DNA of 58,283 nt, filler included, from Basidiobolus meristosporus CBS 931.73 (taxonomy: Eukaryota; Fungi; Basidiobolomycota): assembly GCA_002104905.1 (NCBI GenBank). It is 3 parts of 3 records of this genome, joined end to end, with 100 filler letters (N's around TTAATTAATTAA, not from the genome) between each part and the next. Parts side by side here need not be neighbours in the genome. Positions count along the whole stretch, not along the records: positions 24,184 to 46,631 come from MCFE01000976.1; 2 more parts are not named here. One strand, written 5' to 3'. Below the pieces are notes generated by a model. That model was not told where the DNA came from. It saw only the letters and a list, made by a program, of their open reading frames with translations, and ran no database searches. A program made the translations under genes and the position numbers. Every line of letters begins with the position of its first letter. Position 1 is the first letter of the stretch. Below are positions 4,949 to 46,631 of the stretch, in pieces.

Positions 4949-4989
4949 GGATTGGCAACAAATGAGTGAGGAGCTCCAGTGCTTTAGAG

Positions 4990-25434: not shown

Positions 25435-25639
25435 GTGGAGTGAATAACGTATTTGTGGGCTGTTATATAGCATATAATATGGTTTAGCTGGCAAAATTGC
25501 TATTATATATTTCATGGATTAATCAGGTCATTACTCACACCATTACAATGCTGTTTGAGTATCATCCGTATTTTGCATTCTCCTATTTTTTCAATTTTCT
25601 TCTATTATTTGGTGGAACTCACCATGACCAAACCTTATA

Positions 25640-25870
25640 TTTTGTCTTTATTTTCTATTGCTAATCCTAGTATCTTTGAAGTGGCGACAAGCAGATCTCT
25701 TATACTTCATGCTGGCTGAGTGATGATTATTTGTGACTGTTGCTGCTTGGGCTGGTAGAGGGCTTGATCAATGACTTGCCCCTGATCGAACTGGTTTGAG
25801 TAGGACAAGGCATTGGCTTTACTGGAAGAATGACCATTGATGTTGTCCAGCAAGGCTTGGGATGGTTGTA
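25640..25870 (-). pseudogene. 3' fragment of a secreted family B gene
   Basis: Matches 30200-30430 (CAAGCCTTGCTGGACAA..CAATGGTCATTCTTCCAGTAAAGCCAATGCC). Confidence 0.75.
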
Positions 25871-25879
25871 AATTTTAAA

Positions 25880-26221
25880 TATCAATTGAGCAACCGCTAC
25901 AAAAGTAAGGGACTAGTGGCCTTGGTGTTATATCCACAAACTTAGCCAATCACTTGAATCTCGCCGACGAATTTAAGGAGAACTTCCTGGATGTCAGAAG
26001 AGGCTCTGAAATCCCTTACTTGGAAAACCATCCCTCAGGGAGCGGCAACTCACATTGTTGCTGCCTTTGACCCCTTGATTGTAAATCAGTCTGGCTCATA
26101 TCTTGAAGATGCAAAGGTTAGCAATGAGACCGCGCGGCCTTATGCTTTGGATGACTCTAATGCCCAACAACTTTGGAAGCTGAGTGAAGATTTGGTGAAG
26201 TATCCAGAACTTGTCGCATAG
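25880..26221 (+). pseudogene. C-terminal fragment of a short-chain dehydrogenase/reductase (RDH/WWOX-like)
   Basis: QLSNRYKSKGLVA..GVISTNLANHL..WKTIPQGAATHIVAAFDP..SGSYLED..ALDDSNAQQLWKLSEDLV. No Rossmann N-terminus. Confidence 0.75.
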
Positions 26222-26839
26222 AAATAAAATGTAGAGATTTGTACCCGCAATGTATAGCAATATATTTCATCAGAATTAGCAGATCTGCCAGTCAGCTAAG
26301 AGTTTTTGAATCTCAAGTAAATAATCTAAGCTAAACTATGTTTCTTGGGTAATGTTGGATAACTGTATTATGTATACTGCTCGTGACTATGAATTAACCA
26401 ACTACGTAAGAAAAGTGCCATTCCTGCGTGCACGCTTCAAGCCCTTGCTTGAAAGATCGTAGTACAAGTCGTTTTGCGTCTCACGAATAACACAATTGTA
26501 TGTTGACTTAAACGGCAATTTACCTCCCAATATTGATACATTTATTTTAAAGTTCGATGGAGTAAGTACACAAACATTGAACATGGCTTTACTGACATCC
26601 CAAAGTATCTTCAAATGCGGTTGTTGATACACAACGCTGTTTGGACTTCTCTCTTGCCACCAACCAAATGTGGAGTGCCCCTATGCCTTTGGTGTCTGTC
26701 GATTTTTTTTTGGACCGGTACACTGTGTCTGCCATGGATTGATAGTGAGAGTAGGGTAGTCGTGCAAAGAATGTCTATTTGTTTCACCTTCCCAATATCC
26801 TCAGTTTAGGTTGATTTATCTGATAGGCGCAATTGTCAG

Positions 26840-27262
26840 CACACTAATTGTATTGAACATTTTGTTCGGTCTCTGCTACATCTTGGGTGGACTACATCAC
26901 AACGTAGGGATACGAAGAGCTATTGTCCGGGTGTTTCGCTCCCTTTTGCTTGGCGTATTCCAGTGCGTTGGCCCCACCCTCCGGTTCGAGACTGGGTCCT
27001 GCTTGATACTTGACATTGAAGCCTTTATTGCTGTTGGCATTAGCAATGTTCAGGTTATTGGGCTTTCTGGTCACGGTGGTCAAACCTGGCACAATAACGG
27101 GGATTGAACATTGGACGACTTAACAACGTTTTGGTAGCAATCATTCGCATACTGTATACATGGTAAAATGCGATAATGAACCCCTCAATACTCGCGAGTG
27201 TATGGAGAGTAACCGCCGATTGCGGCAAGGTCTCCAATCACTGCTACTGTAATAAAGCGCAT
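26840..27262 (-). pseudogene. Frameshifted family A paralog
   Basis: ATGCGCTTTATTACAGTAGC start; TVTRKPNNLNIANANSNKGFNVKYQAGPSLE; deletions break the frame. Confidence 0.75.
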
Positions 27263-27923
27263 GTGGAATGAATAGTGTATTTGTAGGCTGGTATATAGGC
27301 TTGGCTGGACAAATTGCTATAACTTATTTCATGGATTAATCAGGTCATTACTCACACTGTCACTATGCTGTTGCGGGCACACTCCTAACGATTGTTTGGG
27401 CTCCATCAGTATTTATATATTTTTATTTGCATTCCCCTCACGCATGTCCATAGTTCTTATTTTTACTCATTTCTTCCATTGTTTTGTGGAACTCACCATG
27501 ATTTTCTGGAGCATACTTTAAAGTGGCGTGACTTCTTGTACTCTCCCGATTTATATCACCTTCTCGATCCCACTCCTGATTTAGCCTGGGTACCTCACCG
27601 TTTGCTATTTCTTAAAAGTGAACCTTATGCCTAGCTGGTGATTCTCGTAAGTGAGACAGTGCATACACGAATTAGTAATCAGCATTTAATGTCAACCAGA
27701 TGCTTTATAGTATAAAGCTAGAGGTAGATACTGAAGAAAGCGAAAGGCGACGTTGGCGATAGTGATGCTTAGATGTTCTTGGCGCAACAGTCCGAGTTCG
27801 GAGCCACTACAACATGACTTAAACGTTAGTAAGAGTGACCGAATGATACTTATATGCTGCCCTTGTATATTGTTGATGTAACACCACTTTGTGCTGCATA
27901 TCCAATACTATACGAGATAATCC

Positions 27924-28390
27924 CTACTCCACCATGCCACTAAATTCCTTGAAAGTTACTGTTTCCGCACGGGAAGTTCCGTGCCAATCTTTGTTACAAC
28001 CGCAAATATCATTGCCGCCTTTTGCTGGGTAACCCCACAGACTAGGCTTAAGTTCTTCCGGCTTTTTCTGTCTTCTAAAAGCGATCCAGGGCGACAAAAA
28101 ATACGTCAATCCCATCAGTTGCATCATGAACACGCTTTGCCACGCTTCCACTCTGTGTACCTAGGCTTTGAGAAAGCTCCTGAATCATCCTCATGCATTC
28201 TGCGAACCTTACTTCCTGTCCAGAATGAAGATGGAAATTCTTCATTACACGCCTTTACGTTTTTATATAGCTCTACATACTCGGGGGTTGCCGTAGTATT
28301 GGGTCGGTTACGTTCAAGAGGAGCGGCAAAAGAGGATGCAAGTATCAAAGCACTGGCTAAGAGGATATCTTGAGTAGACACTCCTCTACG
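27924..28390 (-). pseudogene. Orphan, probably secreted protein gene (possibly disrupted)
   Basis: ILLASALILASSFAAPLE signal-like stretch in ORF 28124-28576; possible continuation in another frame (27924-28151); no clear ATG. Confidence 0.4.
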
Positions 28391-28879
28391 GCCTTTATAT
28401 TCGTTATTATACCTTCTTGGTTTATAAGTCACACAACATGCAACTTTAATATTAATCACGTTTGGGAAGAACCCAGAAATGATTAAACAGTCTAGTTCAT
28501 CCGGTATAAAGTAGTACTTTTCTTGGATTGGATTCATTACTAAGCCATATCTCTTACATTTGTGCATCGATAACAACAGTGTCTTGAACGACCATTACTC
28601 ACTGCTCAGTATCATCTAGACAATTGCTCCGATTTATTGATCATTACATAGGAAAAGATTTATGTTCTTCCACTGATTTTCAGTTTAATTTAGTCTGCCA
28701 AACCCGGGATTTTGTATTTATTGATCGTAAATTCGATTGCCATTTCTTCATTATGAAAAAACACTGATGGGTAACGACAAAACAGTAGGTAAAGATACTT
28801 TATGATGCTTGCTTCGAGTGACGGTAGTACTTCAAGAATATTTGCTTTCAAACTCTTTCGTAAGGTCCAAGTACAAGCT

Positions 28880-28961
28880 GGTGAGGTGGCCGAGTGGTCT
28901 AAGGCGCTGCGTTCAGGTCGCAGTCTCTTCGGAGGCGTGGGTTCGAACCCCACCCTCATCA
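28880..28961 (+). tRNA. tRNA-Leu(CAG): tRNA-Leu(CAG)
   Basis: Acceptor stem GGTGAGG/CCTCATC+A, D-loop TGGCCGAGTGGT, anticodon arm CTGCG-TTCAGGT-CGCAG, long variable arm, T-loop GGTTCGAACC. Confidence 0.97.
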
Positions 28962-29331
28962 TCTATTTTACTCTTAGCTTGCACAAAAATGATAAGAGGA
29001 AATATCACAATGCTAACAGTCACTGGGCAGTCTGTCAATCTCGAATCTTTGTGTTACCAAAGTCAATCCGGTAACCCTGCCAGACATTCTCTCTAATATC
29101 AACCTTTTCGGTGGAGGGCAGCATCACTAAAGACTGAGGGTGAGTATGTTACTACGTAAGCGAATATCTAATATTAATGCCCGCAGCTCTGATCATGATA
29201 CAGGTGCGTGCAAGTAAAAAGCTAATCACAACTAACAACAAGTATAAGAATGTCATTTGAATTTTATTGATTGAAAATTTTCAGTTGTAGCGTGGTGATG
29301 ACTACCTACATTTTCAGCTCATGTCATCGCA

Positions 29332-29829
29332 CTAATTGTATTGAACGTTTTGCTCTGGACAATCTTTTACGCATTGCATCTCTGCCACAGGGGTTGTGTA
29401 TTGTATATCTTGGGCGGGCTGCATCAGGACGTAGGGAGAGAAAGAACTATCTTCCAAGTGTTCCGCTCCCTTTTGCTTAGCATATTCTAATGCATTGACC
29501 CCACCCTCCAGTTCGAGACTGGGCCCTGCTTGATACTTGACATTGAAGCCTTTGTTGCTGTTGGCGTTAGCAATGTTCAGGTTATCGTGCTTTCTGGTCA
29601 CCGTGGTGAAAACCTGGCGCAATAACGGGGATTGGACATTCGTCGTCTTAACGACAGGCAAAACTCGAGCGTTTTGGTAGCAATCGCTCGCATACTGTGC
29701 ACATGGTAAGCTGCGATAATGCACCCTTCTATACTCGCGAGTGCATGGAGAAGAACAGCCGATTGGGGCAGCAACGGCAACTTGAAGAGCGGCAAGGCCT
29801 AGAATCACTGCTATGGTAGTAGAGTGCAT
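29332..29829 (-). CDS. Secreted Cys-containing small protein, family A (165 aa, orphan)
   Basis: Signal peptide MHSTTIAVILGLAALQVAVA-APIG; upstream TATATAGC/TATATAATA; ORF intact in both duplicates. Confidence 0.8.
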   Translation of the reverse strand: MHSTTIAVILGLAALQVAVAAPIGCSSPCTREYRRVHYRSLPCAQYASDCYQNARVLPVVKTTNVQSPLLRQVFTTVTRKHDNLNIANANSNKGFNVKYQAGPSLELEGGVNALEYAKQKGAEHLEDSSFSPYVLMQPAQDIQYTTPVAEMQCVKDCPEQNVQYN

Positions 29830-30185
29830 GCTGAAGAATAGCTGAGAAATAAGTTAGTTGCATACGACGCTATATAGCATGGGAGGCTATATAATAAGGT
29901 TAAACTGAGGGCATAAAGTGAGTATTATTAGATACATTCTGTTATGGACTTTATTGAGGAAACCTGTAACATATAAAACACATGCGCTGGAATGACAGCC
30001 TCTGTATATATTATATGGTTCTATCACCACTGCCCATAATTCTCTTCAAATTATGCCACTATTTACAACGATAAGGAACGCTATTTCTGCGTGTGCATAT
30101 CAGCAAATTCTTGAATACTTGTACATCATCAGTATGCCTAGTAATGTATTGCTCATTTTATTTCGTAAATTTGCTTTTACTGGAC

Positions 30186-30731
30186 TTAATGTCTGTTTCC
30201 ACTGAAATATCTCACTTTGAAGTGGCGACGAGCAGATCTCTTATACTTCTTGTACCCACCTCTAAGAGCACGCGCTGCTGGCTGAGTGATGATAATTTGT
30301 GGCTGTTGCTGCTTGGGCTGGTACAGGGTTTGATCAATGACTTGCGCTTGGTCGAATTGGTTTGAGTTGGACAAGGCATTGGCTTTACTGGAGGAATGGC
30401 CATTGATTTTGTCCAGCAAGGCTTGGGATGGCTGAAGATTGGAAATATCGAACTCTTGCAACCCAGAGAATCCTGGCTGCTCACCCGAAGTCTCGCTTGT
30501 TTGCATTGGCTCACTCATCTCCGAATCATCCCCCTCCTCAGTTGACGGCTGGTATTCTTGACTGGGGGCCGAAGTGTCCTGATAACAAGCACCCTGTTGT
30601 TCGACGCATGGCTCATTGGTGAAGGCTACCTGGGAGTCACCGAGTGGGGTAGCGGAGATTGCTTGCAACGAAGCGATGGCGGAAACTAGCAAGAGGAAGG
30701 AAAGCTGCATGACTGGCTGGTGGAGTCTCAT
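30186..30731 (-). CDS. Secreted Q/S/E-rich small protein, family B (181 aa, orphan; may start at the second Met, 30710)
   Basis: Signal peptide MQLSFLLLVSAIASLQAISA-TPLG; acidic middle, basic C-tail; intact in both duplicates. Confidence 0.8.
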   Translation of the reverse strand: MRLHQPVMQLSFLLLVSAIASLQAISATPLGDSQVAFTNEPCVEQQGACYQDTSAPSQEYQPSTEEGDDSEMSEPMQTSETSGEQPGFSGLQEFDISNLQPSQALLDKINGHSSSKANALSNSNQFDQAQVIDQTLYQPKQQQPQIIITQPAARALRGGYKKYKRSARRHFKVRYFSGNRH

Positions 30732-32237
30732 GCGAATTTTGACGATTTATATCACCTCGATCCCACTCAATTAGGCTTCGTTCATAGCACTAGCTTTATG
30801 CGAGCTAGATTGATTTAACCTTTGCTACTTTACCTCTTCGTACCAAGGCTACACAGTATAGGTTGCACTTCAAAGTGTGAAGAATGAGGGAGATCTGGTC
30901 AATGATATCCTTAATATCGTTCAAAATTCTCTCAGTTTTTGCAATAACTATCCGTGTTAGTAAGGACTTCGGTAATTTTTTACTAATGAGCTTAAGTGTT
31001 ACCGTCGAGAAAGTCCAAGGTCATTGCGGTCAATTTCAATGGGGTTTGGTACTCCTTTGTATCAGTGTAGTACTGTGAGCTTAACATGCACTTTTGGTAT
31101 TGTTATTCCATCTTTAAGGCAAGTATCTCTTACGATAGTCCTGTCATTGCCTGGAAGGTATTGTCCTTTGGTAGTGCTGTTTTCTTGCTATACACATGCT
31201 TAAATATATTGCTGATCTGACCCTGCCGCAACTGGAGAGCAGCCACCACAGTCAAGCTTTGGGGCAGGCTTATTAAATTAACCTGTTATTACAAGAACCT
31301 AGGGTTGTCGCTGATTGGTGAACAATACGACTGTCATGGGGTGTATAGCACAGTACAGGCGAGAATAAATTGATTAGCTGTTTGCCAAGAGTTGGGGATA
31401 TTGAGTGGATAGTGCTTGGGATAGTTGAGGCTGCCTTGGAATTTCTTGTTGTAGTACACGCGTTTTCAATTAGTTATTTGTCAAAAAACAGGCCAAATAT
31501 GACTGTTCACTTAATTATGCTACTACAATCAATGACTTGAATGGCAATGCTTTCTTACTAGACACATGTTCTTATCTATTGCTAACTTCATCCTGCAACA
31601 GATGGAGTACAGCGTCGGATTAAGAGCTCAGCCACCGACTATCACGGTCATTCTTTTGGGTTATTACAAGAACAGACTCATTGCTGATTGGTGCAAATCC
31701 TTGTCGCCAATGACCGGCATGGTGCGTAGAGACGGTGCCGGCAAGAAGGAATTATTCACGGTTGTGTTTAGCCAGTACGGTAAGACATCAGCCAGGGCCA
31801 TAGAGACTTATGTGTATTGATTCTAATGGCTTTGGGTTAACTTTCCGTTGGTGAATTTTGGCGATGGGCTATGGCCTCAGAATTGAAGTTGATTACGCTC
31901 CTTGCCTCGCTATTCAATAGAAAAGTATGTTGAGAAGGATAGTGATTCATATATTTTCCGTGCAATTACTCATTGAATCATTGTCAGCCAACATGTTGTA
32001 AAACTTGTTTCCTCAGGTAATGTTGCAGATTTGGCCTCAACTGTAACCATTCATGATTTCTGGATCATTTCTCCAAGCTTGGCCTAAGACTCAGCACTTT
32101 AGGTGGGAAGCCGCTATACTTAGTAGAAAAGGGCACATGAAGCAGCCAACACTAAGCCACCACCTGGATAAGGTGATATAAAGCAGCAGGTGTAGGCTTG
32201 CCAGTCTCAAGACTTATTGCACTCCACTTCCTCAGCC

Positions 32238-32456
32238 ATGGTATCCGATCAAGAAGCCCGTTTGTATTCTGCCGAAGTCAGAGAAGAAATTGCCAGAGCC
32301 AAGAGAGCTAACAATGGAAACTACGCCTCAGTCACAGTCAGAGGGATTCGCTGGACTTGGAGAGGACCCGGAACTGGCGAGCTGTCCTCCAAGCAGATCC
32401 TCGAAGGGAGAAAAGGGACCACCTGCGTGGATAGCCAGACATGGGTAATCTCGTAG
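32238..32456 (+). CDS. Small orphan protein family D (72 aa)
   Basis: GCCATGG start with TATAAA at 32177; ORF conserved at 55254 and 56243. Confidence 0.55.
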   Translation: MVSDQEARLYSAEVREEIARAKRANNGNYASVTVRGIRWTWRGPGTGELSSKQILEGRKGTTCVDSQTWVIS

Positions 32457-33424
32457 GGTTTGGTTGGTGCCTACGTAGCCGGTGGACTCTTGGAGATGTT
32501 GCTGTTAAGGATATTTAGCTGAAGCATTGTGAAATAAATGAGTTCAAATCCGCATTCCTTTGACCCCGCTGTATTATGGGTATTGCACTTTATTAAATAT
32601 GTGTGAACTGCTACTTTGATTGTCTAAGTATAGCATGAGAGCGGAGTTTTACATGCTTTTGATCAGATACACGTGTACAACTGCCGTGTACATGCATCCG
32701 TTCCAGCAATCAGTATCGTGCCACACGCTCCGTACTTCTGAAGACAATAATTTTCTGTTGCGGTTAATATGATATGGCACCCCTGAGGTCTTTGCTTTTG
32801 CCTTAGTAGCGTTGGCTTCCTTTAGAAAAGGCATTGTTTAATTTCTGCTGCCAAACAACCTAGATCTCAACGTGTATCCTAAATAACCTTGAGACTGTTA
32901 AGCATCTATCAGCCGGACGCCACTTTGAATCTGTAACAGCTATTGCGCTGATCTATGTAAGTGCTGAAGAAATCAACGTGTTTCTAAGCAGGAAAAATAG
33001 ATTATCTAGAACTCTTATTTTGAGTACTCCTGCAGCCAAATAGGTATTTTGATAGATGCCGAGCTCCGCAACCTCAGTTATTGTACGTAGAAAGAGCATG
33101 GCAAATTTGGTGAGTTGCTGTTCAGTGCCTATTGGTCCACACTTCCAGGTGCAATATAGAGTGAAGCTCACAATCTGTTTACCCACATTGACTTGTGCTT
33201 GACTAAATAGATGAAGTTGGAAATCAGCATTTCATTTACCCCTATATTACTCAAATGCCTTAATATTCAACTTGGCTAAGTGTCTATTAGCAGTTTATAT
33301 ATTTGGGAGCCTAAGTCATCCTAAAAAAGGTCAAAAGATGGATTTTCCTATTACTTGCTACTTTGCATGTGGATGTAGAACTATGTTACACATTTTGTGG
33401 CTAAGTATAAGTCTGCTGTGCCCC

Positions 33425-33493
33425 TCTGGCACATTATGGCACTATTTGGCACTTGTGGCTCAATGTGACGCAATCTAACAGAACAAGTCTATT
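33425..33493 (+). repeat. Isolated end of the Harbinger-like element
   Basis: TGGCAC at 33427, 33437, 33447, then AACAGAACAAGTCTATT (compare 2396-2412 AACGGAACAAGTCTATT). Confidence 0.6.
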
Positions 33494-34020
33494 ATAGTTG
33501 ATTTTTTTGGCTAAACTCACAGCTTTCAGTTTCTCAGGTTCTGTTGTTTATACAGACAGGACAATTATTTCAAGGTGGTGAATAGGGTGAATAGGGCAAA
33601 TAACCTTTCACAAGATTTGCTAATGAAATTCACACTAACCAGGTGTGGGACAAGTATTACTGCTGGAAGCACTAGTCCAAGATTTATTCCAAAGGTTGAT
33701 GATTCTGTAAACAGAAGAGGAAGCATCAAAGTGATTTATTTGCATCAAACAGAAATACTAAGACTAATTAGTAATTATAATGGTATCCCGGGCCCTGATC
33801 TTATGGGAATATATAGTCACATACATCTAATAGTGTATTTATACTAATTGTCCAGCATCCACCAGAGGTTTTTGACAGAGTAGCACTTTTATTTATACTG
33901 TTGTAAATGATGTGTAGCATATATGGTTAGAATACCCCAACATACACTGTTTACTTCTTTATCCAGCTACTTGTATACTTATATTCTTTCTAGCATTGAA
34001 CATTGAACGTAATAGATTTA

Positions 34021-34130
34021 TTAATCATCAGATACAGCATCTCTGGCCAGACTTGCATCCAGTATCCCAGAATACAGATCTCCAACGCACAAGGAGCCTC
34101 TTGAGTTCCCTTGGGCTTGGCACAAGAGAG
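34021..34130 (-). pseudogene. 3' half of a small secreted peptide gene, family C
   Basis: ALLCQAQGNSRGSLCVGDLYSGILDASLARDAVSDD*; the signal-peptide half seen at 57484 is replaced. Confidence 0.55.
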
Positions 34131-35277
34131 CATTATGGCATAGTGGTACAGAGTTAATGTGGTACTAATAAACAAAATCAAAATCCATAAACCGGGTTGC
34201 TCATCAGATACGCTATTGTGTAGTGGTTGTTCTACACTAATAAAGCATCTTTGATTTCTAACTAGAAAGTTAATCAGGACCTTGAGATGCATAGACAATC
34301 TCAATAATTATGTTTACAGTAGCACGTACATTCCATGGCTGTTGTGGCTAAGCAGTCTGTAACAATGGAATGAGTGTGGATACATTGATCACAGTCACTC
34401 TACCATTTAAGACTGATATTCAATCATGGTATGCAAAGTCCTAGGTAACACTGTCACTTATAAAGTATAAATGATATATAGTATTGTTGCACATGGTCTG
34501 CAAATAAACACCTGTTAGCCAATGAATCTTGATTTTTAAGCCTTTGCAGTAATATGCAAGTATTTGATACAACTTTAGTGTTTGTAGTGACTTGCTTTGA
34601 TTTTGCGTCATTCCACGTAGACACCTGCAAGTAAATATAGATATGAGATTGCTTCCCACCATGGGAAGTTTAGTTACTTTTCATTCATGAAAGTAGTGAC
34701 TAGTGAAGTTTATCCGCAGCCTACATTCATAAGACTTTAACCATAGAAATATACCCTGGAGATGTTACTACAATGCCACTACAATGCCACTTATATTAAG
34801 TTATCTACCATCTGCGCTTTGGAATATGAGCAACCTAAGACAGAAAATTTAGCCCCAAACTTTGGACACATGTAGAAGTATAAAGAATACTCTTATGTTT
34901 GAGTAAAGACCCAATATCCCAAGACTCTACTTGTTTATGCGTAACCACTTTTGTCTTCACAGGACTACAAACAGATGCTTTGTATACAATGAATCAATAA
35001 GTGCTGTCATTGTTGGTTTGTAGGCGCATTCATTTATTTCAATGAAGCCTTTTTGGATGAGAAATAGAAGTACGGTAATATGCCAGCCAAACTCCACACT
35101 TTCCATTGTAAGATGAGCTATGGGGAATCAAGTTGGCAATCTCCAAAATAACCGTGTCAAACACTCTTCTTCTGGATTGAGCATACTCTTTGGCGCATCT
35201 GTCTACCCACAGACCATGGTTACTGGGATGTGTGTGCAGTATACAGCAATGAAAGCCATATTTTTAAGAGAACACCT

Positions 35278-36611
35278 TTAGGGGAGGGAGAGTCACCAAG
35301 GTAGGTGAAATCTTTATTTGAGTTAAGAACTAATCTAAGTGCAAATAAAGAGGCCAATTAAGAGGTCTAGAACCTCTCTAATAAGTAATCTAATTTATGA
35401 TTTGTTTCATCTCTAATGTTTGTTTCAATAAAGTGAAGCTCATCAGGGGTAAATATGAAATTCAAGGGTTTTGGGGGAAGTACAAATTGTAGATGTTTCT
35501 GATCAATATAATCCAAGACTGGAACCCAGCCTGGAATTAGGTGTAGTAGGAAAGGTGTGTGGACTTGTAAGTAGCTCTGCCACATAGATCTTAGATGGTC
35601 CTGAGCCAGTAGTCTTGGTTTCTCAGCTTTTTGAAGTTTTGAAGCAAGCTCTATTACTACAGCAGAGCCAACCAGGGTGTGCCAGCAAGAAGATTTCAGG
35701 GAGGAGTTAGATTGAAGCCATTGTTTGATGGAGGGGTTATGTGATTTCTGAAGTTTGACTAGGAAGGAAGCACGGAGATAGACCATTTGGATTTGGTATG
35801 GGTAGAACCCAAAAGCTCCATTAGTTGCATGGATATAGGGAGATACTGGAAGATAAGGTACCAAGGATCTGATACACTGATGGAGAAATTTATCCAGGCG
35901 GTGAAGTTCTCTGGAGGTTAGGGGTATAATGTGGAGGCCAAATTCAAGTACTGGCAGTACATACTGCTTCAGAAGTATAGGGATCTTCTGAATTGGAGTG
36001 TCTGGAGTGACTACAACCAGAAGCTTTTTGAGAGCCTGTTTGGCAAGATGGATCTCATTATTCAGGTGGAGTTTTGAGTCAATCCCATGTTGACAAAACG
36101 GCAGACCTAGATATATTGCAGTTTGTTGTGGCAGAATGCTAGTGTTCTGTATAGTTGTAGTGCACCCAATTGGGACTGTCGTGGAAATTGAGAGTGAGAG
36201 GTTGTTGGCAGCCAAGTACTTCTCAATGATGGCAGTGTCTGCTATGGGATTAGGAGTAGCAATCTTGATATCATCCGCATAGAGAGTTAGTAGTGGATAG
36301 GGAGAGTCTGGTGAGGGGCCTTTTGAAAATAAAGGAAAGTTGTGTAGGAATATCACAAATAGTAATGGGCCTAGTACAGATCCTTGGACTACTCCATTTG
36401 GAACCTCATAAGTCTCTGATGTGCAACTTGGATGCAAAATTTTGGCTGAGTTCTCACAAAATAGAGAACGTACAAGAAGGGTCATTGGTAGTGTGGTAAC
36501 TGCTAATAGCTTTCTCCAAAGCAGAGCTCTGTCCACAGAGTCAAAGGCTTTAGTAATGTCAAACAGAATGGTTGGCAATGAGAATTGAAGTGAATGATCA
36601 TGGCTTAGTAC
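35278..36611 (-). mobile_element. Telomeric LINE unit 1 (5'-truncated, subfamily alpha)
   Basis: The 3' end reads TTAGGGGAGGGAGAGTCACC on +; RT ORF 35367-36578; joined directly to the 3' end of unit 2. Confidence 0.9.
35367..36578 (-). CDS. Non-LTR reverse transcriptase, C-terminal 403 aa (truncated)
   Basis: FDITKAFDSVDR, GVVQGSVLGPLLF, LYADD, YLG, YVLPVLEFG. Confidence 0.9.
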   Translation of the reverse strand: MPTILFDITKAFDSVDRALLWRKLLAVTTLPMTLLVRSLFCENSAKILHPSCTSETYEVPNGVVQGSVLGPLLFVIFLHNFPLFSKGPSPDSPYPLLTLYADDIKIATPNPIADTAIIEKYLAANNLSLSISTTVPIGCTTTIQNTSILPQQTAIYLGLPFCQHGIDSKLHLNNEIHLAKQALKKLLVVVTPDTPIQKIPILLKQYVLPVLEFGLHIIPLTSRELHRLDKFLHQCIRSLVPYLPVSPYIHATNGAFGFYPYQIQMVYLRASFLVKLQKSHNPSIKQWLQSNSSLKSSCWHTLVGSAVVIELASKLQKAEKPRLLAQDHLRSMWQSYLQVHTPFLLHLIPGWVPVLDYIDQKHLQFVLPPKPLNFIFTPDELHFIETNIRDETNHKLDYLLERF

Positions 36612-37802
36612 TTAGGGGAGGGAGAGTCACCAAGGTAGGTGAAATCTTTATTTGAGTTAAGAACTAATCCAAGTGCAAATAAAGAAGCCAATTAAGAGGT
36701 CTAGAACCTCTCTAATAAGTAATCTAATTTATGATTTGTTTCATCTCTAATGTTTGTTTCAATAAAGTGAAGCTCATCAGGGGTAAATATGAAATTCAAG
36801 GGTTTTGGGGGAAGTACAAATTGTAGATGTTTCTGATCAATATAATCCAAGACTGGAACCCAGCCTGGAATTAGGTGTAGTAGGAAAGGTGTGTGGACTT
36901 GTAAGTAGCTCTGCCACATAGATCTTAGATGGTCCTGAGCCAGTAGTCTTGGTTTCTCAGCTTTTTGAAGTTTTGAAGCAAGCTCTGTTACTACAGCAGA
37001 GCCAACCAGGGTGTGCCAGCAAGAAGATTTCAGGGAGGAGTTAGATTGAAGCCATTGTTTGATGGAGGGGTTATGTGATTTCTGAAGTTTGACTAGGAAG
37101 GAAGCACGGAGATAGACCATTTGGATTTGGTATGGGTAGAACCCAAAAGCTCCATTAGTTGCATGGATATAGGGAGATACTGGAAGATAAGGTACCAAGG
37201 ATCTGATACACTGATGGAGAAATTTATCCAGGCGGTGAAGTTCTCTGGAGGTTAGGGGTATAATGTGGAGACCAAATTCAAGTACCGGCAGTACATACTG
37301 CTTCAGAAGTATAGGGATCTTTTGAATTGGAGTGTCTGGAGTGACTACTACCAGAAGCTTTTTGAGAGCCTATTGGGCAAGACGGATCCTATTATTCAGG
37401 TGGAGCTTTGAGTCAATCCCATGTTGACAAAACGGCAGACCTAGATATATTGCAGTTTGTTGTGGCAGAATGCTAGTGTTCTGTATAGTTGTAGTGCATC
37501 CAATTGGGACTGTCTTGGAAATTGAGAGTGAGAGGTTGTTGGCAGCCAAGTACTTCTCAATGATGGCAGTGTCTGCTATGGGATTAGGAGTAGCAATCTT
37601 GATATCATCCGCATAGAGAGTTAGTAGTGGATAGGGAGAGTCTGGTGGGGGCCTTTTGGAAATAAAGGAAAGTCGTGTAGGAATATCACAAATAGTAAGG
37701 GACCTATTACAGATCCTTGACCTACTCCATTTGGAACCTCATAAGTCTCTGATGTACAACTTGGATGCAAAATTTTGGCTGAGTTCTCACAAAATAGAGA
37801 AA

Positions 37803-38499
37803 TGTTGTGCATCAACATTTAAAACTTAGCCAATTTTACTCTGTTTGAAAATCTAGTACCCTAACTGATTTTCCCTAACCCAAACATAACAAATCCCAGT
37901 TACAGTTCATTTTATCCCACCTCAGAATCTATTTTTAGCTATCACACCTGATCTATTTTCAAATGGTCATTATGTTATCAACCTATCTGCCAAGCCTTCC
38001 CAGGTGATGAGTCATCTGAGATCTATCCAACCATGGTGCAGTTGCCAAGACATCAGTTGATTGATGATGTAATTTTCACTTATCTTATGCACCTATGAAC
38101 ACCCAAATTGATTTCAATCAATCCAGTCCCTTGGCTCTTACTAATTCAACATGATCAGAAAAGTATAAATAAAGTTTACTGAACCTTTTGGTTTAGTGTG
38201 TGTCTCAACAAAATTAAGATTCTGTCTCAGCAAAAATAAGAATTCAACAATTCCGTTCTAGTTTCTACCCAAGCCTAGTATATCTAGCACTCCAAAGAAC
38301 ACCAAGCCTAGCCTGCCTAGCAAACAAATATCATTGCCTTTATAGCCAACCCAGCTATATCCAAGACCAATATTAGATCGGAATCTTTCTGCTAATATTT
38401 CTGCCACTCTCTGACAATTCTAAGATTCTGCACTTAATTGTCCCTTTGGTTCAGTTAAACCATTCAAGAGTTTTATTACACTTTCTCTTGGATTCATCA
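37803..38499 (+). repeat. Gypsy 5' LTR (LTR-B)
   Basis: Homologous to solo LTR 46983-47657 and to fragments 43859-44105 and approx. 51050-51238; TATAAAT at about 38164. Confidence 0.88.
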
Positions 38500-38540
38500 T
38501 TTTTTTTTGTTGAATTCCATTACATTCAGCCAATTAGAAG

Positions 38541-41500
38541 ATGCCCTCAGCAGCAAGCAATCCAAACCTTTCCATGTTGGAAGAAGCCAGAAGAAATCAG
38601 GAAGAACTTACTGAACAGCTTGAAAACATCATGCTTGAAAGAAACACCATGATGCTTGAGCACTCAAAGCTTGCCAAAACAAGATCTGATAATCACCGTA
38701 GAGATGAACTCCTTGAAGTTATATCCAGTTACCAAGATGAAATTGGAATAATTAAGGAAGCACTGGAGAATATTGCCATAGTAATTGACAGCATTGAAAA
38801 TCCGCCAAACCTTGCTCTGCCTCAGCCACCAAGAAGTCATGCCTTTGAATCCTCCAGATCTACATCTCCTTCTAGACCTGCCCCGGTGGTTGTCCCAAGA
38901 TCCTTGCCTGTTTATGTTGAAGGCACCAATGCCATCAAGAATCCAACTGAGTTTCTTTACAAGTTTAGTCACATCTTAGCTGCACACCAGCTAGACCCTG
39001 ACACCAACTGGGCTAGACTTCTGCCTCTCTATCTCACAATGCAAGATGCTGACTGGGTTGAAGTGAACATTCCTTCCAATAGTACGTGGAAAATTGCCCA
39101 AAACCTCTTTTGCAGCCATTTTGAGGATCCTCTCAAGAAAGCACATCTGAACTGCGACTTATGGAAAACTAAAATGCAAAAAGGTGAATCTGTGCAACAC
39201 TTCTGTGATAGATTCCAAAGACAAATGAGATTAGCTGAAGTTAGTGATGATAATCCATCGCTTACTGCTCATTTTCTTTCAAACTTTTCACACCAGCTAC
39301 AGAGCAATATTGCTATTGTCAAAGCATGCAACCCTGCACGTACCTATGACCAGATCTCAGAGATATGTACACTGGCAATCACCTTGACTGCAGCTGTTAG
39401 CCAGACTTCAGGTAGCTCAACCCAATATCCCACAACAGCCGGAAAAGAGACCAGTCATGTGACCAAGAAGCAGTCAACCGCTACTAAGCACTGTGAGCTT
39501 CATGGAAAATGCTATCATTCTACCAGTGAATGCAAAGGCATCACCAAGCAGTCAAACAAGTCAGGAAACACCGCAGAAAAGCAGCAAAACACCAAAACTG
39601 ATAATCCATATGCTGATGACAAGTGCTTTAAATGTGGAAATATGGGACTTAGATCACCTGCCTGTCCTGAGAAGAACTCCACACCATCAGCCAAAATCAC
39701 CCATATCCTTGATGATCATTCAGCCAATGATACAATGGGGTATGAAGAAGCATATGAAGAACTTACAGCTCAAGATTATCACAACCTCTTTGAGCTTCCG
39801 GCTAAAATTGCAACTGTTCAAGAAAAGAAGCAACTAATCACACAGCTCAAAGCCATAGAAGTGCCACTCACCCTCAATGGCCAGTCATACGTAGCACTAC
39901 TGGATACTGGATCATCCAACTCTATTGTATCACCCAATGTAGTCAGAGAACTCAATTTGGAGATAGAAAAATGACCAGGAAAAATCATTCTTGCAGCTAA
40001 GGATCTCTCAGCCCCAAGAATTGGCATTACCAACCCAATCAACATATATTGTAGCTCAGTAACCATAATCCATCAGATGGAAGTGATTGACATACCAGAT
40101 GGACCTCAGGTAGTCATTGGTCTGGACACCTTCACCAAACTTGGCTTTCACATAGGCGGACTACCGGTTTCCTATCCAGGAATCACTAAATCTCAGCCGC
40201 TCATAATGGTTCAAATCCCAGAGATTATCTCATCCCAACCGGAAGAAGAAGAGTTAACCCCAACATTTCAAGAATATTCTCAATCAGTCAAATTGAATAT
40301 TCAGCCGGCCATAGAGAGAAATCAGGCCATTCCAAGGAACAGCTTCTGCACCATCCCAGAATCCATTGTTACACTAGAGACCCCACCTGGTGAGTCAACA
40401 TGGAGGAGGCAATACCCAATTCTGCATTCATGTCAACACTTAGTTGATGAGATAGTCCAAAAATGGGCTGACAATGGAATTATCACTCAAGCCCCTGTCA
40501 ACACAACATTCAACAGCCCTTTGACGCTTGCACCAAAGAAAGATGCTGATGGAAATCTAACCCTGAAGAGACCCTGTTTGGACCCCAGACCTCTGAACAA
40601 GCTTCTCCAAGATGACAAGTTTCCAATTCCAAGAATCCAAGATATCTTTTCCGCACTATCAGGAGCAAAAGTATTCTCCAAGTTGGACTTGAAGGATGCA
40701 TATCACCGATTCCAGATCCATCCTGATCATCAGCATAAGACTGCCTTTACTTGGAATAATATGTAATGGATGTTTCAGGGAGCTCCCTTTGGCCTAAAGA
40801 CACTTACCAGCAAGTTTCAGAGAGTCATAACTATAATACTCAAGAATGCACCATACGCATTGGTATTTGTTGATGATGTCATCATATTTTCCACTAACCG
40901 TGATGATCATGCAACCCATGTCACTGATGTAATCAACAGACTGACAAGTGCTGGACTGATTCTCAATGCTGAAAAGTGCAGTTTTGCCCGCCTCAAAATC
41001 AATCTACTTGGATTTATAGTCACACCAGCTGGCCACCAATTGGATCCTTTCAAACTGGTCAATATCCCAGAATGGCCAAAACCCACTAGCACCAAGCAAC
41101 TTCAACACTATCTTGGAGTATTCAACTATTTCAGGGAACACATACCACTCATGTCCTCATTGAGTGCCCCTTTAGATGTATTACACCATAGCCCTGATCT
41201 CACCTCAGCCTGGAACAAGACTCATGACCAAGCCTTTGAGTCACTCTGCCAACTGCTTCCACAAGCACCCACCTTATCCTACCCAGACTTTACTAAGCCC
41301 TTTGTTGTTGCTACGGATGCATCTAATGTTGGGTTAGGGGCAGTCCTCTATCAAGATGAAGACCAAAATCCGCCTCACTGGATCTCTTTCCAAGCCAGGT
41401 CCCTACAACCTGCTGAGAGAAACTACTCTGCTACCAAGAAGGAGCTACTTGCCATAGTCTTTGCCTTGAAGAAGTTTCATCAGTATCTATGGGGTAATCC

Positions 41501-41800
41501 TTTTACCTTGTACACTGACCACCGAGCCCTTGTCTATATCCACACTCAGAAGACTCTGACTCCAATGCTTACCAACTGGCTTGATACTCTACTTGATTAT
41601 GAATATACAGTTGTTCATTGCCCAGGAATTCTCAACATCCTTCCTGACCACCTGTCAAGACTTTTTCCAACTTCACCTTGGGAGGGACATGTGATTACTG
41701 ATGTAATCAGTAAACTCTCTACAACTTCCAAAATAGTTCCTCAACTGGATTCAGCAACTTGGAAAATCCCACCTGAAAAACAAAGGAAAACATTGATACA
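38541..41800 (+). pseudogene. gag-pol: Gypsy gag-pol, single frame with two nonsense mutations (39972 TGA, 40764 TAA)
   Basis: ORFs 38541, 40077 and 40770 share one frame. Retrotrans_gag-like core, CFKCGNMG, LLDTGSS, PCLDPRPLN, FVDD, TDAS, TDH. Confidence 0.93.
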
Positions 41801-41805
41801 GAGGA

Positions 41806-43529
41806 GTACAAGAAGGGTCATTGGTAGTGTGGTAACTGCTAATAGCTTTCTCCAAAGCAGAGCTCTGTCCACAGAGTCAAAGGCTTTAGTAATGTCAAAC
41901 AGAATGGTTGGCAATGAGAATTGAAGTGAATGATCATGGCTTAGCACTACAGCCATATCCAAGGAGAGTTTGGGCAAGAAGCCAAACTGGGAAGGATGGA
42001 ATGGATATAGTTGAGATTGCAAGGATCTTGCTATTATAAGCTCAAATATTTTCCGGCAGGTTGGTAGGAGCAAAACTGGCCGGTAAGAACCTGGGAGTGA
42101 GTGTTTCCCCTTCCCTTTGTATAAGGGTATTACATTTGCCTGTGACCAGGCCTTTGGGGTAGTCAATTGTTGGGCACAGATAGAGTAGAATGGGAGAAGT
42201 AAGTGACTCATTTTGGAGTAGCACACCTGGAGTAGATTGTAGGTAATCAAGTCATGTCCAGGTGCAGTATTTGCAGGAAGCTTCTTTAAAATATTCTCCA
42301 GAAGCTTTGCTGAAACCAAAATTGGAGATGTTGGACTGCCAGATATGTTACCAGTATGGTAGAAAGGAGGAGTGGGATGCACGGTTGAATCAAAGAATAT
42401 AGGGGCCAGTTTGTCTGGTGATGGTATACTCCTTGCTTGGGGTCTCATGGCTTTGTATACTCTTGATATAGACCTTGTGGTGGCATTCATATTTACTAAG
42501 GGCAAGGTATCCATGATATGAGCCCATAATCTAGTATGCTCAGTGATCTGTAGTGACTTGGAGTAGGAGATTGTGCTTTCCAGGAGGTTCTGTGTTTTTG
42601 GGTTAGGGAAACATAGGTAGCTGGAATTTAAGGCAGAAATGATGGATTTCCATTTAAGTTGTTTTGCAGATGGCTTTTGGTAGGACTTGGTGGGCAGGGC
42701 CAGACAGCCAGTGATTATGATGAAATGCTGGTAAAATAGCCATAATGCATTTACATCATCACAAATCCATGCAGGTAAGCTGGGAAATGCATATTCTGTA
42801 AGCAAGGATAGGTAGTTGGCAAAGTCCTGTGTCTGTGATACTGAAGCTTTGGCTGGCAGGATTGTAAATGGCTGAAGAAGGGTGCCAATTGGTAGGGTTT
42901 TTCTGGCAGAAATGATAATATGTATTGGCTTGTGATCAGATTTCTCTAGTGAGCCATAGCTGATATCCTCTGGAATGCTTGTAACCTGGTGGATGTACTG
43001 TAAGGCAGCAGGAGTGGCTGTTACCCAGTCAACACAATGTTGAGCTTGCTGAGTGTTTACAGTGACCAGATGGTTTTGTCGGAGGAGCTTTGTAAAGTGC
43101 TCCTCTTGGGTTCTAAGTCTGGATGAAATAGTGGTGATATTTTCAGGGTGGGAAATATTTATATCTCCCACTACCATACAAGGGATTGATGAGCTGTTAA
43201 TGAATTCTGATGTGGCCAAGAATATTGCCAGTGTTATGGAGTTAGACAGAGATGGAGGGAGATAGATAATAATGGCTACTATAGTTGGAAGTGTTAGAGC
43301 ATAGCAGTAATATTCATAGATGATGGATACATTTGCTGAGGGTGCAAGCTTAGAAGATGAAAGAGCAACAAGTGCCATTGAGTGAGCTGGGAATTTTGGG
43401 TGAGCAGATGAATATGCATTCAGTCTAGAGGGAAGTTTTGGCAACCTAACATCTATTAGTAGGAGCAAGGAATATTCCTTTTTCAGTAAGTTTTCTAATT
43501 CAGCTACAGTTGGAGTGATGGAGTAGGAG
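41806..43529 (-). CDS. APE endonuclease plus RT N-terminal part of LINE unit 2
   Basis: IYLPP, VVGDIN, CVDWV, SDH (APE motifs); PGHDLI, SYRPVLLLPTCRKIFE, QFGF, FDITKAFD. The frame is open upstream of the listed start, to about 43529. Confidence 0.9.
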
Positions 43530-43531
43530 GG

Positions 43532-43858
43532 TTAGGGGGAGGGAAAGTCACCAAGGTAGGTGAAATCTTTATTTGATTTCAGACAAGTCTAACTACAAAT
43601 AAAGAAGCCAGCTGGGAATAGAAGATTCCCAAAGTAAACACTAAGTTGAATATGAATAAATCTAAGCTAAAGTTAAGGCAGTATCCCAGAGTACACTGGA
43701 GTTCAGGTTCATGGGGGAGTGAAGTAGATAAGCTTGAGAGATATAATAATCCTTAAGGAAGTGGGTAACAGCAGGTGAAGGGGAGTTTTTGATAAGTGAA
43801 GTGAATCTTGAGATCAGAGATTCCTCTAAAGAGAAGGTCTTGTAAACTGGAGAATCAG
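43532..43858 (-). mobile_element. Telomeric LINE unit 3 (3' stub of a third subfamily)
   Basis: Same 3' terminus TTAGGGGGAGGGAAAGTCACCAAGGTAGGTGAAATCTTTATTTG; body diverged from units 1/2 and 4. Confidence 0.8.
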
Positions 43859-44105
43859 TGTTGTATCCAAGAGAAAGTGTAATAAAACTCTTGAATGGTT
43901 TAACTGAACCAATGGGACAATTAAGTGCAGAATCTTAGAATTGTCAGAGAGTGGCGGAAATATTAGCAGAAAGATTCTGATCTAATATTGGTCTTGGATA
44001 TAGCTGGGTTGGCTATAAAGGCAATGATATTTGTTTGCTAGGCAGGCTAGGCTTGGTGTTCTTTGGAGTGCTAGATATACTAGGCTTGGGTAGAAACTAG
44101 AACGG
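43859..44105 (-). repeat. Gypsy LTR-B fragment (R-U5 portion only)
   Basis: Reverse complement of 38253-38499, with an intact CAACA end at 43859. Confidence 0.92.
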
Positions 44106-44118
44106 TTAGGGTTAGGGT
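44106..44118 (+). repeat. Interstitial telomere repeats (TTAGGG)2T
   Basis: Lies between the broken LTR and the 3' end of LINE unit 4. Confidence 0.85.
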
Positions 44119-46582
44119 TTAGGGGGGAGACAGTCACCAACAGGTGAAATCTTTATTTCAGTTGAAACAAAGAAGCCAGTGCTACTGTTGTAGCTTTGAT
44201 ACAAGAGTGTGTAGCTGAGGGGAATTTGTAGGTAAGTTAATAAGAAGTGATGATAGTTCTTCAGTGCTCAAGACACTGTTCAGTGGGAAGGGGGGTAGCA
44301 AGAGAGGTAAGAATGACTTGTGAACAACATTAATGAGGGGAATGTGATAAGGATTGATATTCATCATAAAGGGAGTGTGCTGCTGCAGATATTGCTGCCA
44401 AAGGTCTGTCAAGTACTTCAGGTAGGCCAGCTTGGGTTTTTCTGACTGCAGAATATAGTGAGCAAACTTCTTGACTTCAGGATCTCCAAGTATAGTTCTC
44501 CAGCAGGAGCCAGGTGTTGTGTGGTGTGTACTCTTCCAGGCCTTAATCAGTGGGTTGTTGCAGTTGTGAAGTCTGAGGTATAATCTGGTTCTAAGGTAGA
44601 GAAGTCTGATCTTATAGGGCATAAACCCAAAAGCACCAAGAATAGCATGTCTGTAGGGGCATTCAGGCAAATGAGGCACCAAGGAGGTAATGCACCATAC
44701 TGCAAACTTGTCAAGCTTAGTGCAGTCTCTAGAAGTAAGAGAGAGAAGTGGTAAGCCAAATTCCAGGACAGGGAAGACAAACTGCTTGAGTAGAAGAAGG
44801 CAGCTGGGAGCTGAAGTTGTAGGAGGAGTAACAGCCAGTAGCTTGTGGAGTGCCTGTCTTGCCAGGATAATTCTCTTCTTCAGGTGTGCTCCAGAGTCTA
44901 TTCCAGTAGGAAGGAAAGGAAAGCCAAGATATGTAGCAGAAACCTGAGCAGGTAGAGTGGAGTTCTCCAAGTTGATGGGAGAGCCCAAAGGTACTGTCTT
45001 TGCAATGGAAAGCTGGAGATTATTCTTCTGCAGATACTGGTGGATGGTCTGGGAGTCTTGTTGCACATTGGAGGAGGATATTCTGATGTCATCAGCAAAG
45101 AGAGTAACCAGGCAGTCAGCTGAGAGTCTTGGGAAATCATTCAGGAAGATGGCAAACAGTATAGGACCAAGCACAGAGCCTTGAACCACTCCATTAGGAA
45201 CTGAGAACACAGCTGATTGCTCACTTGGGTGCAGAATTCTTGCTTGTGGATCCAGAAACAGAGACCTGACAAGGAGGGTGAGAGAGGTACTGGAGAAGCA
45301 TTGCAACTTGGACCAAAGCAGATTTCTGTCAACTGAATCAAAGGCCTTAGTAATATCAAACAGAACAGAGGGATACTTGCACTGGAGAGAGTGATCTTGG
45401 CTAAGTATGACTGCATATTCCAAGGAGAGGCCAGGAACAAAGCCAAACTGTGCAGGATGAAACTTGAGGGAGTCAGAGTAGAGCTCCTGAGCAAGCAGAA
45501 GCTCAAACACCTTTCTGCAGGTGGGCAGCAGAGATATTGGCCTGTAGGAGCTAGGATCCAGGTGCTTTCCTTTACCCTTGTACAGTGGCAGAACATTTGC
45601 AAAGGACCATTCCTCAGGAGTAGAAAGCTGGGCTGAGCATTGTTGAAACAGTGGAAGCAGAAGTGCAGACATGGCCTTGGTACTAGTCTTCAGAAGCTCA
45701 TAAGAGATTGTGTCCACACCTGGAGCAGTAGAGTTGGGAAGTCTCTTGAGCACATTATGGATTCTCCCTTGATCAAGTGCCAGTGGGATGGGCAGAGTCT
45801 TGAAGTCAGGATGAAAGCCAGGAGTTGAGTACTGCTTTGTAGAGAAGAAGATGTTAGCCAGCTGTTCTGTTGAAGGTAACTTCCTGGAAGAGGGCCTCAT
45901 TGCCCTGTAGAGTCTTGATACTGTTCTTGTTATAGAGTTGGAAGATTGCAGAGGCAAGGAACTCATAATATGATCCCAGAGCTGAGTATGCAGAGAGTGG
46001 TGAATTGCCTTGGAGTGGTGTATTGCTGTCAGGAGGAGTTTCTCTGTTTTTGGGTTAGGGAAACTCAGGTAGCTTTGTTGCAGGGCTGAAACAATGGATT
46101 CCCATTTTCTTGAGGTAACAGCAGTAGTCTTGCATGGCAGTGAGAGGGAGGCAGACACCAGAATCAGATGCTTCACAAAGAGCCAGGCATAGTTGAGATC
46201 ATCTGGCAGAGAAAGTAGCAAACTGGCAAGCTTCAAGTGGTTCCCAAAGTCTTTCTTCTGATTCTTAGTAGCTTTGTGGGTGAGCACAGTAAGTTTTGGC
46301 AGCTTCTTCTTCACAACTGGTTGCATAGAAAGGGACCAGGCTGGGTGGTCAGAGGCTCTCAAGGATCCTAGCTCAGCTCCAGAGAATTGCTTAACTTCAT
46401 CCACAAAGTAGAGGGCAGCAGCAGAAGGGCAGATCCAGTCAGCACATCTTTTCTCAGATTGAGCACCTAGTGCTAGCAGATGGCTTTCTCTCAGGAAGTT
46501 CAGTAGGAATGTAGACCTTGGCTTCATTCTTGCAGTCAGAGTAGTCTTGTTCTCAGGATGGGGAATGTTGAGATCTCCAAGC
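44119..46582 (-). mobile_element. Telomeric LINE unit 4 (subfamily beta), 5'-truncated inside APE and capped by the telomere
   Basis: 3' end TTAGGGGGGAGACAGTCACC; the frame is open to LGDLNIPHPE at the telomere junction. Confidence 0.93.
44182..46527 (-). CDS. APE(C-half)-RT polyprotein of LINE unit 4 (781 aa plus upstream in-frame LGDLN)
   Basis: CADWI, SDH, APGVDTI, SYRPISLLPTCRKVFE, QFGF, FDITKAFDSVDR, GVVQGSVLGPILF, LFADD; no RNase H or CCHC seen at the C-terminus. Confidence 0.93.
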   Translation of the reverse strand: MKPRSTFLLNFLRESHLLALGAQSEKRCADWICPSAAALYFVDEVKQFSGAELGSLRASDHPAWSLSMQPVVKKKLPKLTVLTHKATKNQKKDFGNHLKLASLLLSLPDDLNYAWLFVKHLILVSASLSLPCKTTAVTSRKWESIVSALQQSYLSFPNPKTEKLLLTAIHHSKAIHHSLHTQLWDHIMSSLPLQSSNSITRTVSRLYRAMRPSSRKLPSTEQLANIFFSTKQYSTPGFHPDFKTLPIPLALDQGRIHNVLKRLPNSTAPGVDTISYELLKTSTKAMSALLLPLFQQCSAQLSTPEEWSFANVLPLYKGKGKHLDPSSYRPISLLPTCRKVFELLLAQELYSDSLKFHPAQFGFVPGLSLEYAVILSQDHSLQCKYPSVLFDITKAFDSVDRNLLWSKLQCFSSTSLTLLVRSLFLDPQARILHPSEQSAVFSVPNGVVQGSVLGPILFAIFLNDFPRLSADCLVTLFADDIRISSSNVQQDSQTIHQYLQKNNLQLSIAKTVPLGSPINLENSTLPAQVSATYLGFPFLPTGIDSGAHLKKRIILARQALHKLLAVTPPTTSAPSCLLLLKQFVFPVLEFGLPLLSLTSRDCTKLDKFAVWCITSLVPHLPECPYRHAILGAFGFMPYKIRLLYLRTRLYLRLHNCNNPLIKAWKSTHHTTPGSCWRTILGDPEVKKFAHYILQSEKPKLAYLKYLTDLWQQYLQQHTPFMMNINPYHIPLINVVHKSFLPLLLPPFPLNSVLSTEELSSLLINLPTNSPQLHTLVSKLQQ

Positions 46583-46631
46583 TTAGGGTTAGGGTTAGGG
46601 TTAGGGGTTAGTAGGGTTAGGGTTAGGGTTA
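46583..46631 (+). repeat. Terminal telomere (TTAGGG)n, about 8 units with variants
   Basis: G-rich strand runs 5'-3' to the contig end, i.e. a right-hand chromosome end. Confidence 0.92.

Follow-up and report, generated by a model that had tools for sequence, protein, structure and literature searches.

Origin of a truncated Gypsy LTR fragment joined to telomere repeats within a terminal LINE array of Basidiobolus meristosporus

How did a piece of a Gypsy LTR come to lie flush against telomere repeats inside an array of LINEs, and do its two endpoints record a reverse-transcription intermediate or simply an integrated element that was later cut short? The question arises at a chromosome end of B. 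meristosporus CBS 931.73 contained in the window, by which we mean the whole stretch of 58,283 nucleotides that was analysed, of which positions 24184-46631 come from MCFE01000976.1. A preliminary description of this DNA had read 43859-44105 as the reverse complement of positions 38253-38499 in a resident LTR, starting exactly at the U5 end, stopping beside an 11-nt putative self-primer and passing immediately into TTAGGG, and had concluded that the strand running towards the telomere is exactly the minus-strand strong-stop DNA expected of the element. The geometry is borne out by a repeat search of the window, which returned these two segments as a single inverted pair of 247 nt (98% complementary), the fragment differing from the resident LTR by five mismatches at 38380, 38402, 38445, 38494 and 38497. 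The interpretation fares less well, as set out below.

The piece 24184-46631 ends rightward in TTAGGG repeats (46583-46631), and as the G-rich strand reads 5'-3' to the right, the chromosome end lies on the right side. Inboard of these repeats, the minus strand carries four non-LTR retrotransposon units in head-to-tail order, with their 3' ends towards the centromere (Table 1). RVT_1 is clear in the LINE ORFs, including the 781-aa ORF of unit 4 (44182-46527), and the endonuclease matches are weak (Exo_endo_phos in L001 scores 23.1 bits, slightly short of the Pfam cut-off of 24.5, and Exo_endo_phos_2 has E 0.003 in unit 2). The two parts of unit 2 are 97.6-97.9% identical to positions 4996-6185 and 3276-4994 of a second chromosome end, referred to here as L003. 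The unit 3 stub, whose 3' junction carries one telomere-like repeat (43528-43537), is 98% identical to L003 313-635 and 1821-2150, and in both of these counterparts the LINE runs on upstream without an LTR. Across the four units of the window and those of L003, the 5' endpoints vary and are followed by 0-2.5 telomere repeats; the array is terminal and head-to-tail, with proximal 3' ends, variable 5' truncation and telomere repeats at its junctions. Repeated loss and re-capping appears from these sequences to be the normal state of these ends.

Table 1. Positions in the window of the features discussed in the text.
Feature	Position	Strand	Remarks
LINE unit 1	35278..36612	-	5'-truncated; 1334 nt, sharing 99% identity with corresponding part of unit 2
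LINE unit 2, 3' part	36612..37801	-	Unit resumes at 41806, to ~43524
Gypsy element, 5' portion	37802..41805	+	4004 nt; within LINE unit 2
Putative self-primer GAATTCAACAA	38240..38250	+	Taken as R start; complement of PBS-like 11-mer
Seven-T spacer and PBS-like 11-mer	38500..38517	+	Spacer 38500-38506, then 11-mer 38507-38517
LINE unit 2, 5' part	41806..43524	-	RT and weak APE-like endonuclease match
LINE unit 3 stub	~43531..43858	-	Last ~328 nt of LINE; 5' end abuts U5 terminus
Gypsy LTR R-U5 fragment	43859..44105	-	Equivalent to 38253-38499; 247 nt
Short internal telomere tract	44104..44127	+	GG TTAGGG TTAGGG TT TAGGGGGG; first GG common to LTR
LINE unit 4	~44122..46582	-	Different subfamily; 5'-truncated within endonuclease region
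Terminal TTAGGG repeats	46583..46631	+	Run to edge of piece

Several further features of this end were observed. The 1334 nt of unit 2 that correspond to unit 1 (36612-37801 plus 41806-41948) are 99% identical to it, as against ~97% for the L003 copy, and the two units may have been added from one source within a short time, or one may have been duplicated from the other. The transposon part of the piece (35278-46582) is strongly CpG-depleted, with an observed/expected ratio of 0.0-0.25 compared to 0.57 in the unique flank (24184-35277), and has a strong skew of G over C on the plus strand; depletion and skew would fit cytosine methylation and deamination in the repeats. The U3 of the LTR and the coding region of two LINE units contain telomere-like 12-mers (TTTGGGTTAGGG, with a single mismatch from the repeat), located at 37873-37884, 42597-42608 and 46049-46060. 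Within the flank, tandem units of ~1.85 kb (24499-30731, 72-96% identical) encode small proteins, of which the ORFs at 25030-25515, 29332-29829 and 30186-30731 have signal-peptide-like N-termini and several cysteines; no Pfam family matched these proteins. A tRNA-Leu(CAG) is located at 28879-28963.

The fragment is oriented with its U5 terminus on the centromere side and its truncated end on the telomere side. Its left end reads TGTTGT on the plus strand, the complement of the LTR terminus ACAACA, whereas the resident 5' LTR reads TCATCA at the same terminus. In the fragment the terminus (...GGATACAACA) adjoins LINE sequence, giving the junction ACAACA/CTGATTCTCC (slashes mark junctions throughout), while the LTR of L003 ends ...GGATACAGCA/ATAAC, directly against unique DNA. 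Given that this second LTR stops at ACAGCA where unique DNA begins, we read the ACAACA/TGTTGT end as the true LTR terminus, and the start of the fragment exactly at the U5 end is thereby upheld. On the right, homology to the LTR ends at 38253, although the last GG could equally be telomeric, and because of this ambiguity we place the distal junction at 38253-38255. Here the telomere repeats begin directly on the truncated LTR with a GG overlap (...AACGG/TTAGGGTTAGGG), with TTAGGGTTAGGG occupying 44106-44117, in agreement with the immediate passage into TTAGGG of the preliminary description, and the short tract that they form bridges the gap between the LTR fragment and unit 4, whose 3' end it adjoins. 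Both junctions are flush, with none of the nucleotides found only in cDNA (primer remnants, non-templated bases) at either.

One other chromosome end was compared with the window (n=1), the end of contig MCFE01000090.1 from the same strain (L003), whose LINE units are 97-98% identical to those of the window. It carries an LTR of the same Gypsy family, 81% identical over 632 nt and of the same polarity as the window fragment (U5 end proximal). Distally it passes directly into a LINE 3' end (...GGTGACTGTCTCCCC/TGTATATCCCTAACC), with the breakpoint at about LTR position 64 and ~375 nt of U3 kept. The preliminary description had expected LTR fragments at other ends to recur with both endpoints, and at this end, compared through an LTR of 81% identity, the distal endpoint differs and U3 is retained, which is the kind of observation that the description had named as refuting its idea. 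As the L003 LTR belongs to an older lineage, this single case weakens the case for strong-stop capture without killing it. What the L003 truncation does indicate is that cutting back into integrated LTRs at varied points happens. L003 was rejected as the orthologous end of the window, since the unique flanks share no similarity.

Other observations on L003 concern the surroundings of this LTR. The LINE joins the LTR 7-10 nt from the telomere-like 12-mer motif. Between a LINE 3' end and the next 5'-truncated unit lies ~870 nt of non-LINE, CpG-containing DNA (6189-7057) that holds an internal duplication of ~150 nt and degenerate telomere-like motifs; foreign DNA therefore occurs at unit junctions outside the window too. 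Five tandem genes (10790-18266) with a CHAP domain (PF05257), a domain that is usually bacterial, lie directly inboard of the LTR.

We consider it about evenly balanced whether the fragment is a remnant of an integrated LTR left by terminal loss and healing, a reading that includes a randomly 5'-truncated, LINE-mediated copy, and it is the reading that we favour. A Gypsy element, of which the fragment would represent the 3' LTR or a solo LTR, would have been inserted by integrase into unit 3 of the telomeric LINE array, at a distance of 328 nt from its 3' end and oriented like the LINE itself. Later shortening of the chromosome end would have reached into the LTR and removed U3, ~13-15 nt at the start of R and all sequence distal to them, and the exposed 3' end (...AACGG) may have been re-capped with TTAGGG repeats through the GG microhomology before LINE unit 4 was added ~2.5 repeats further out. 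On this account the U5 boundary would be the integration junction, and it would be by chance that the distal breakpoint falls so near the putative self-primer.

The proximal boundary is the stronger part of this argument and very probably points to an integrated LTR. It coincides with the LTR terminus of the independently integrated copy in L003, and neither junction contains extra bases, unlike many Ty1 captures; both facts favour integration. So does the spacer downstream of the LTR: the PBS (38507-38517) does not adjoin the LTR end (38499), seven T's standing between them, and only an integrase-processed end yields the observed boundary without extra trimming. Healing after integration is favoured by the analogous truncated LTR of L003, which is likewise joined to a LINE 3' end, and by the varied 5' ends and telomere repeats found throughout the LINE array. 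A target-site duplication cannot show for the fragment, because the other end of the element is lost. Two observations count against our favoured reading, namely that the distal breakpoint falls 2-4 nt from a predicted RNase H cut and that a neighbouring 4-kb Gypsy piece is a non-canonical integration.

The first of these depends on the putative self-primer. The 11 nt of GAATTCAACAA (38240-38250) are exactly complementary to 38507-38517; no complement between the LTR and the next 40 nt is longer, an 11-nt complement arose in 45 of 5000 shuffles, and the pairing closes both the MFE and the centroid RNA folds of 38240-38530 (z -2.9). These folds make a Tf1-like self-primer in the Gypsy element plausible. 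In Tf1, pairing with the PBS involves bases 1 to 11, and RNase H cleaves between the eleventh and twelfth base (PMC7175516). The corresponding end here would be 38251, compared to 38253-38255 for the fragment, with the start site taken from the 11-nt complement alone; the stop near the self-primer claimed earlier is thus real, at 2-4 nt past 38240-38250. Were breakpoints uniform over the 697-nt LTR, the chance of one falling within ~5 nt of the predicted cut would be ~1-2%, and lower still if counted over the whole element. A TATAAA box at 38164 lies upstream of the distal boundary of the fragment. Relatives of the Gypsy family were sought elsewhere. Searches of protein collections revealed no close copy: a word search with gag was empty, one with RT-RNase H gave a best identity of only 65%, and a full HMMER search with gag gave a best identity of 44%, the contigs of its top two matches (L004 and L005/L006) belonging to other families. 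A conserved LTR 23-mer and the LINE 3' end had no exact-pattern match in the metagenome contigs scanned, and the viral contigs scanned gave no matches.

The second observation concerns the 4004-nt piece inside LINE unit 2, which comprises an LTR (37803-38499), gag/PR, RT and RNase H, and stops after RNase H, so that integrase and 3' LTR are missing, as is a target-site duplication. Its ORFs are broken at ~39975 and ~40767. The insertion is clean when compared with two empty sites (unit 1 and L003 4994/4996), the LINE losing one base. The piece begins exactly at the U3 terminus, with one extra A preceding TGTTG; its target (AAAATAGAGAA) is purine-rich and resembles a polypurine tract, and its right junction (ACAGAGGA/GTACAAG) resembles the target (ATAGAGAAC/GTACAAG). 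From these junctions we infer an integrase-independent insertion of incomplete cDNA, either homology-assisted or by break repair, of a kind that has been described for Tf1 (PMC11042837). A canonical insertion followed by a deletion that happened to end exactly at the border of LTR and target-site duplication is less likely. Non-canonical insertion of Gypsy cDNA has thus probably occurred in this array, which raises the prior for capture of strong-stop DNA in the R-U5 fragment as well.

An alternative that would give meaning to both boundaries is that the fragment and the unit 3 stub are together a retrocopy, made by the LINE RT, of a chimeric RNA containing R-U5 and the last 328 nt of the LINE. 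Elsewhere in the genome, a LINE copy would have carried a solo or 3' LTR 328 nt from its 3' end, and this LTR would have served as promoter for an RNA running through U5 into the LINE tail. The LINE RT would have recognised that tail and copied the RNA onto this chromosome end, to or near the RNA 5' end. In that event the U5 boundary would date from an earlier integration and the distal boundary would mark where LTR transcription begins, so that the mechanism accounts for both, the exact LTR terminus included. The combined stub and R-U5 is flanked just as LINE units are, by a telomere-like repeat on the 3' side and TTAGGG on the 5' side; the TATAAA box is suitably placed upstream of the boundary, and the ~870 nt of non-LINE DNA upstream of a 5'-truncated unit in L003 could be a similar upstream-started copy. 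However, a working self-primer needs transcription to start at or before 38240, yet 38240-38252 is missing from the fragment (13-15 nt). Neither a source locus nor a second copy of the ACAACA/CTGATTC junction was seen, the L003 units of the unit 3 subfamily pass the site without an LTR, and trans-mobilisation by the Basidiobolus LINE is unproven. We regard such a retrocopy as unlikely.

Strong-stop capture itself would require that a free Gypsy minus-strand strong-stop cDNA was joined to the eroded unit 3 stub and that telomerase then extended its 3' end. In its favour, the plus strand runs from U5 to R towards the telomere, which is the right polarity, and the 3' end lies close to the cut predicted from a primer/PBS complement that closes the RNA fold; trimming to ...CGG would also supply a GG seed for telomerase. 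Ty1 cDNA is reportedly captured at double-strand breaks in S. cerevisiae, a finding attributed to Moore and Haber (1996) and Teng et al. (1996). The Ty1 cDNA intermediates captured at yeast breaks include minus-strand ssDNA (PMC11372161), and the adjacent 4-kb Gypsy piece looks integrase-independent. The proximal end, in contrast, is not what such a molecule should have. Because of the seven-T spacer, strong-stop DNA primed at the PBS-like 11-mer would begin with A7 before TGTTGT and might still have its primer attached, and the fragment starts cleanly at the LTR terminus instead. In Tf1, roughly half of the cDNA even retains PBS or primer sequence (PMC11042837). Likewise, nucleotides found only in cDNA, which occur in 40 of 56 3' LTR insertions of captured Ty1 cDNA in yeast (PMC11372161), are absent from both junctions. 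Joining the 5' end of an ssDNA to a chromosomal 3' end would be an unusual ligation, and U3 is retained in the LTR of L003, the sole other end compared. Of the earlier claim that the fragment is exactly strong-stop DNA, the polarity and the distal end near the primer therefore stand, and the A7 opposite the spacer is wanting. A non-random distal breakpoint, produced when cDNA of a self-priming Gypsy element patched an uncapped Basidiobolus end that telomerase went on to extend, is in our view distinctly improbable; capture is possible, but it is not supported and we disfavour it.

The version of this idea in which the LINE RT switched template to Gypsy RNA was rejected: microhomology between the stub end (...ATCAG) and the T-run is absent, there is no RNA 3' end at the U5 terminus, and copying would need to begin inside the RNA at the very position of the LTR terminus. 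Priming by the chromosome end on the PBS was also rejected, since ...GAATCAG pairs imperfectly with TTGAATTC and the expected CAA plus A7 is absent, as was single-strand annealing through PBS homology in the style of the integrase-independent Tf1 route, in which the T-run would have stayed. The two Gypsy pieces cannot be made into halves of one rearranged element, because the junctions do not fit. Finally, a fold-back event, in which a resected 3' end copied the resident 5' LTR 5.3 kb inboard from 38499 to 38253 and was then healed, would suit the orientation and copying direction of an inverted templated insertion and has a donor on the same chromosome arm at 98% identity, but it is very improbable given that microhomology is lacking between the stub end (...ATCAG) and the T-run at 38500, chance would have to account for both endpoints, the fragment has the ancestral ACAACA terminus where the supposed donor has TCATCA, and known fold-back insertions are only tens of bases long.

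These readings differ in what they imply. If the fragment is an integrated LTR that was cut back and healed, it is a further case of a truncated transposon where a chromosome end has healed, and it serves mainly to mark Basidiobolus ends as subject to repeated shortening and to rebuilding by telomere repeats and a telomere-associated LINE. If instead the breakpoint is meaningful, genomic DNA would preserve the position at which Gypsy RNA starts, by way of either strong-stop capture or a retrocopy started in the LTR, and retroelement intermediates would join in end repair outside yeast laboratory systems; under strong-stop capture in particular, a reverse-transcription intermediate would have been naturally fossilised at a telomere in the form of this fragment. 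The 4-kb Gypsy piece with no target-site duplication makes non-canonical events in Basidiobolus worth surveying.

When the locus is set beside known systems, the Gypsy element resembles the self-priming Tf1/sushi group in having an 11-nt LTR stretch complementary to the PBS, as in Tf1, but differs in the position of that PBS, which in Tf1 directly abuts the LTR (the flank ATAAC being its first bases; PMC11042837) and here follows seven T's, and the Basidiobolus copy is missing the integrase and any chromodomain. The 4-kb piece is like the integrase-independent pathway of Tf1 in its purine-rich, PPT-like target and its lack of a target-site duplication. With Ty1 capture in yeast, where LTR regions are a hotspot and minus-strand intermediates can be captured (PMC11372161), the fragment shares a short LTR-derived piece at a repaired DNA end; it differs in that cDNA-only nucleotides, frequent in yeast, are not found, the 7-nt stretch expected of strong-stop DNA is not there, and the site is a chromosome terminus, not an internal break. 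LINE 5' transduction and chimeric retrocopies similarly place foreign sequence upstream of a LINE 3' part within one unit, although with neither source locus nor second copy for the Basidiobolus fragment they offer a candidate mechanism only.

The array as a whole has closer parallels. Telomere-associated non-LTR retrotransposons include HeT-A/TART, TRAS/SART, MoTeR, Zepp, GilT and Cnl1, and the units described here share with them the head-to-tail terminal arrangement, proximal 3' ends, 5' truncation to varying extents, and junctions with short telomere repeats. They differ in their host, Basidiobolus, in combining RT with only a weak APE-like match, and in junctions that hold 0-2.5 repeats and sometimes foreign DNA (the LTR, the 870-nt insert). 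As in chromosome healing by de novo telomere addition to a break within a subtelomeric transposon, telomere repeats sit on non-telomeric DNA through a 2-nt GG overlap and the element is truncated on its telomere side only, whereas the Basidiobolus end was extended after ~2.5 repeats by a telomere-associated LINE, inside a LINE array.
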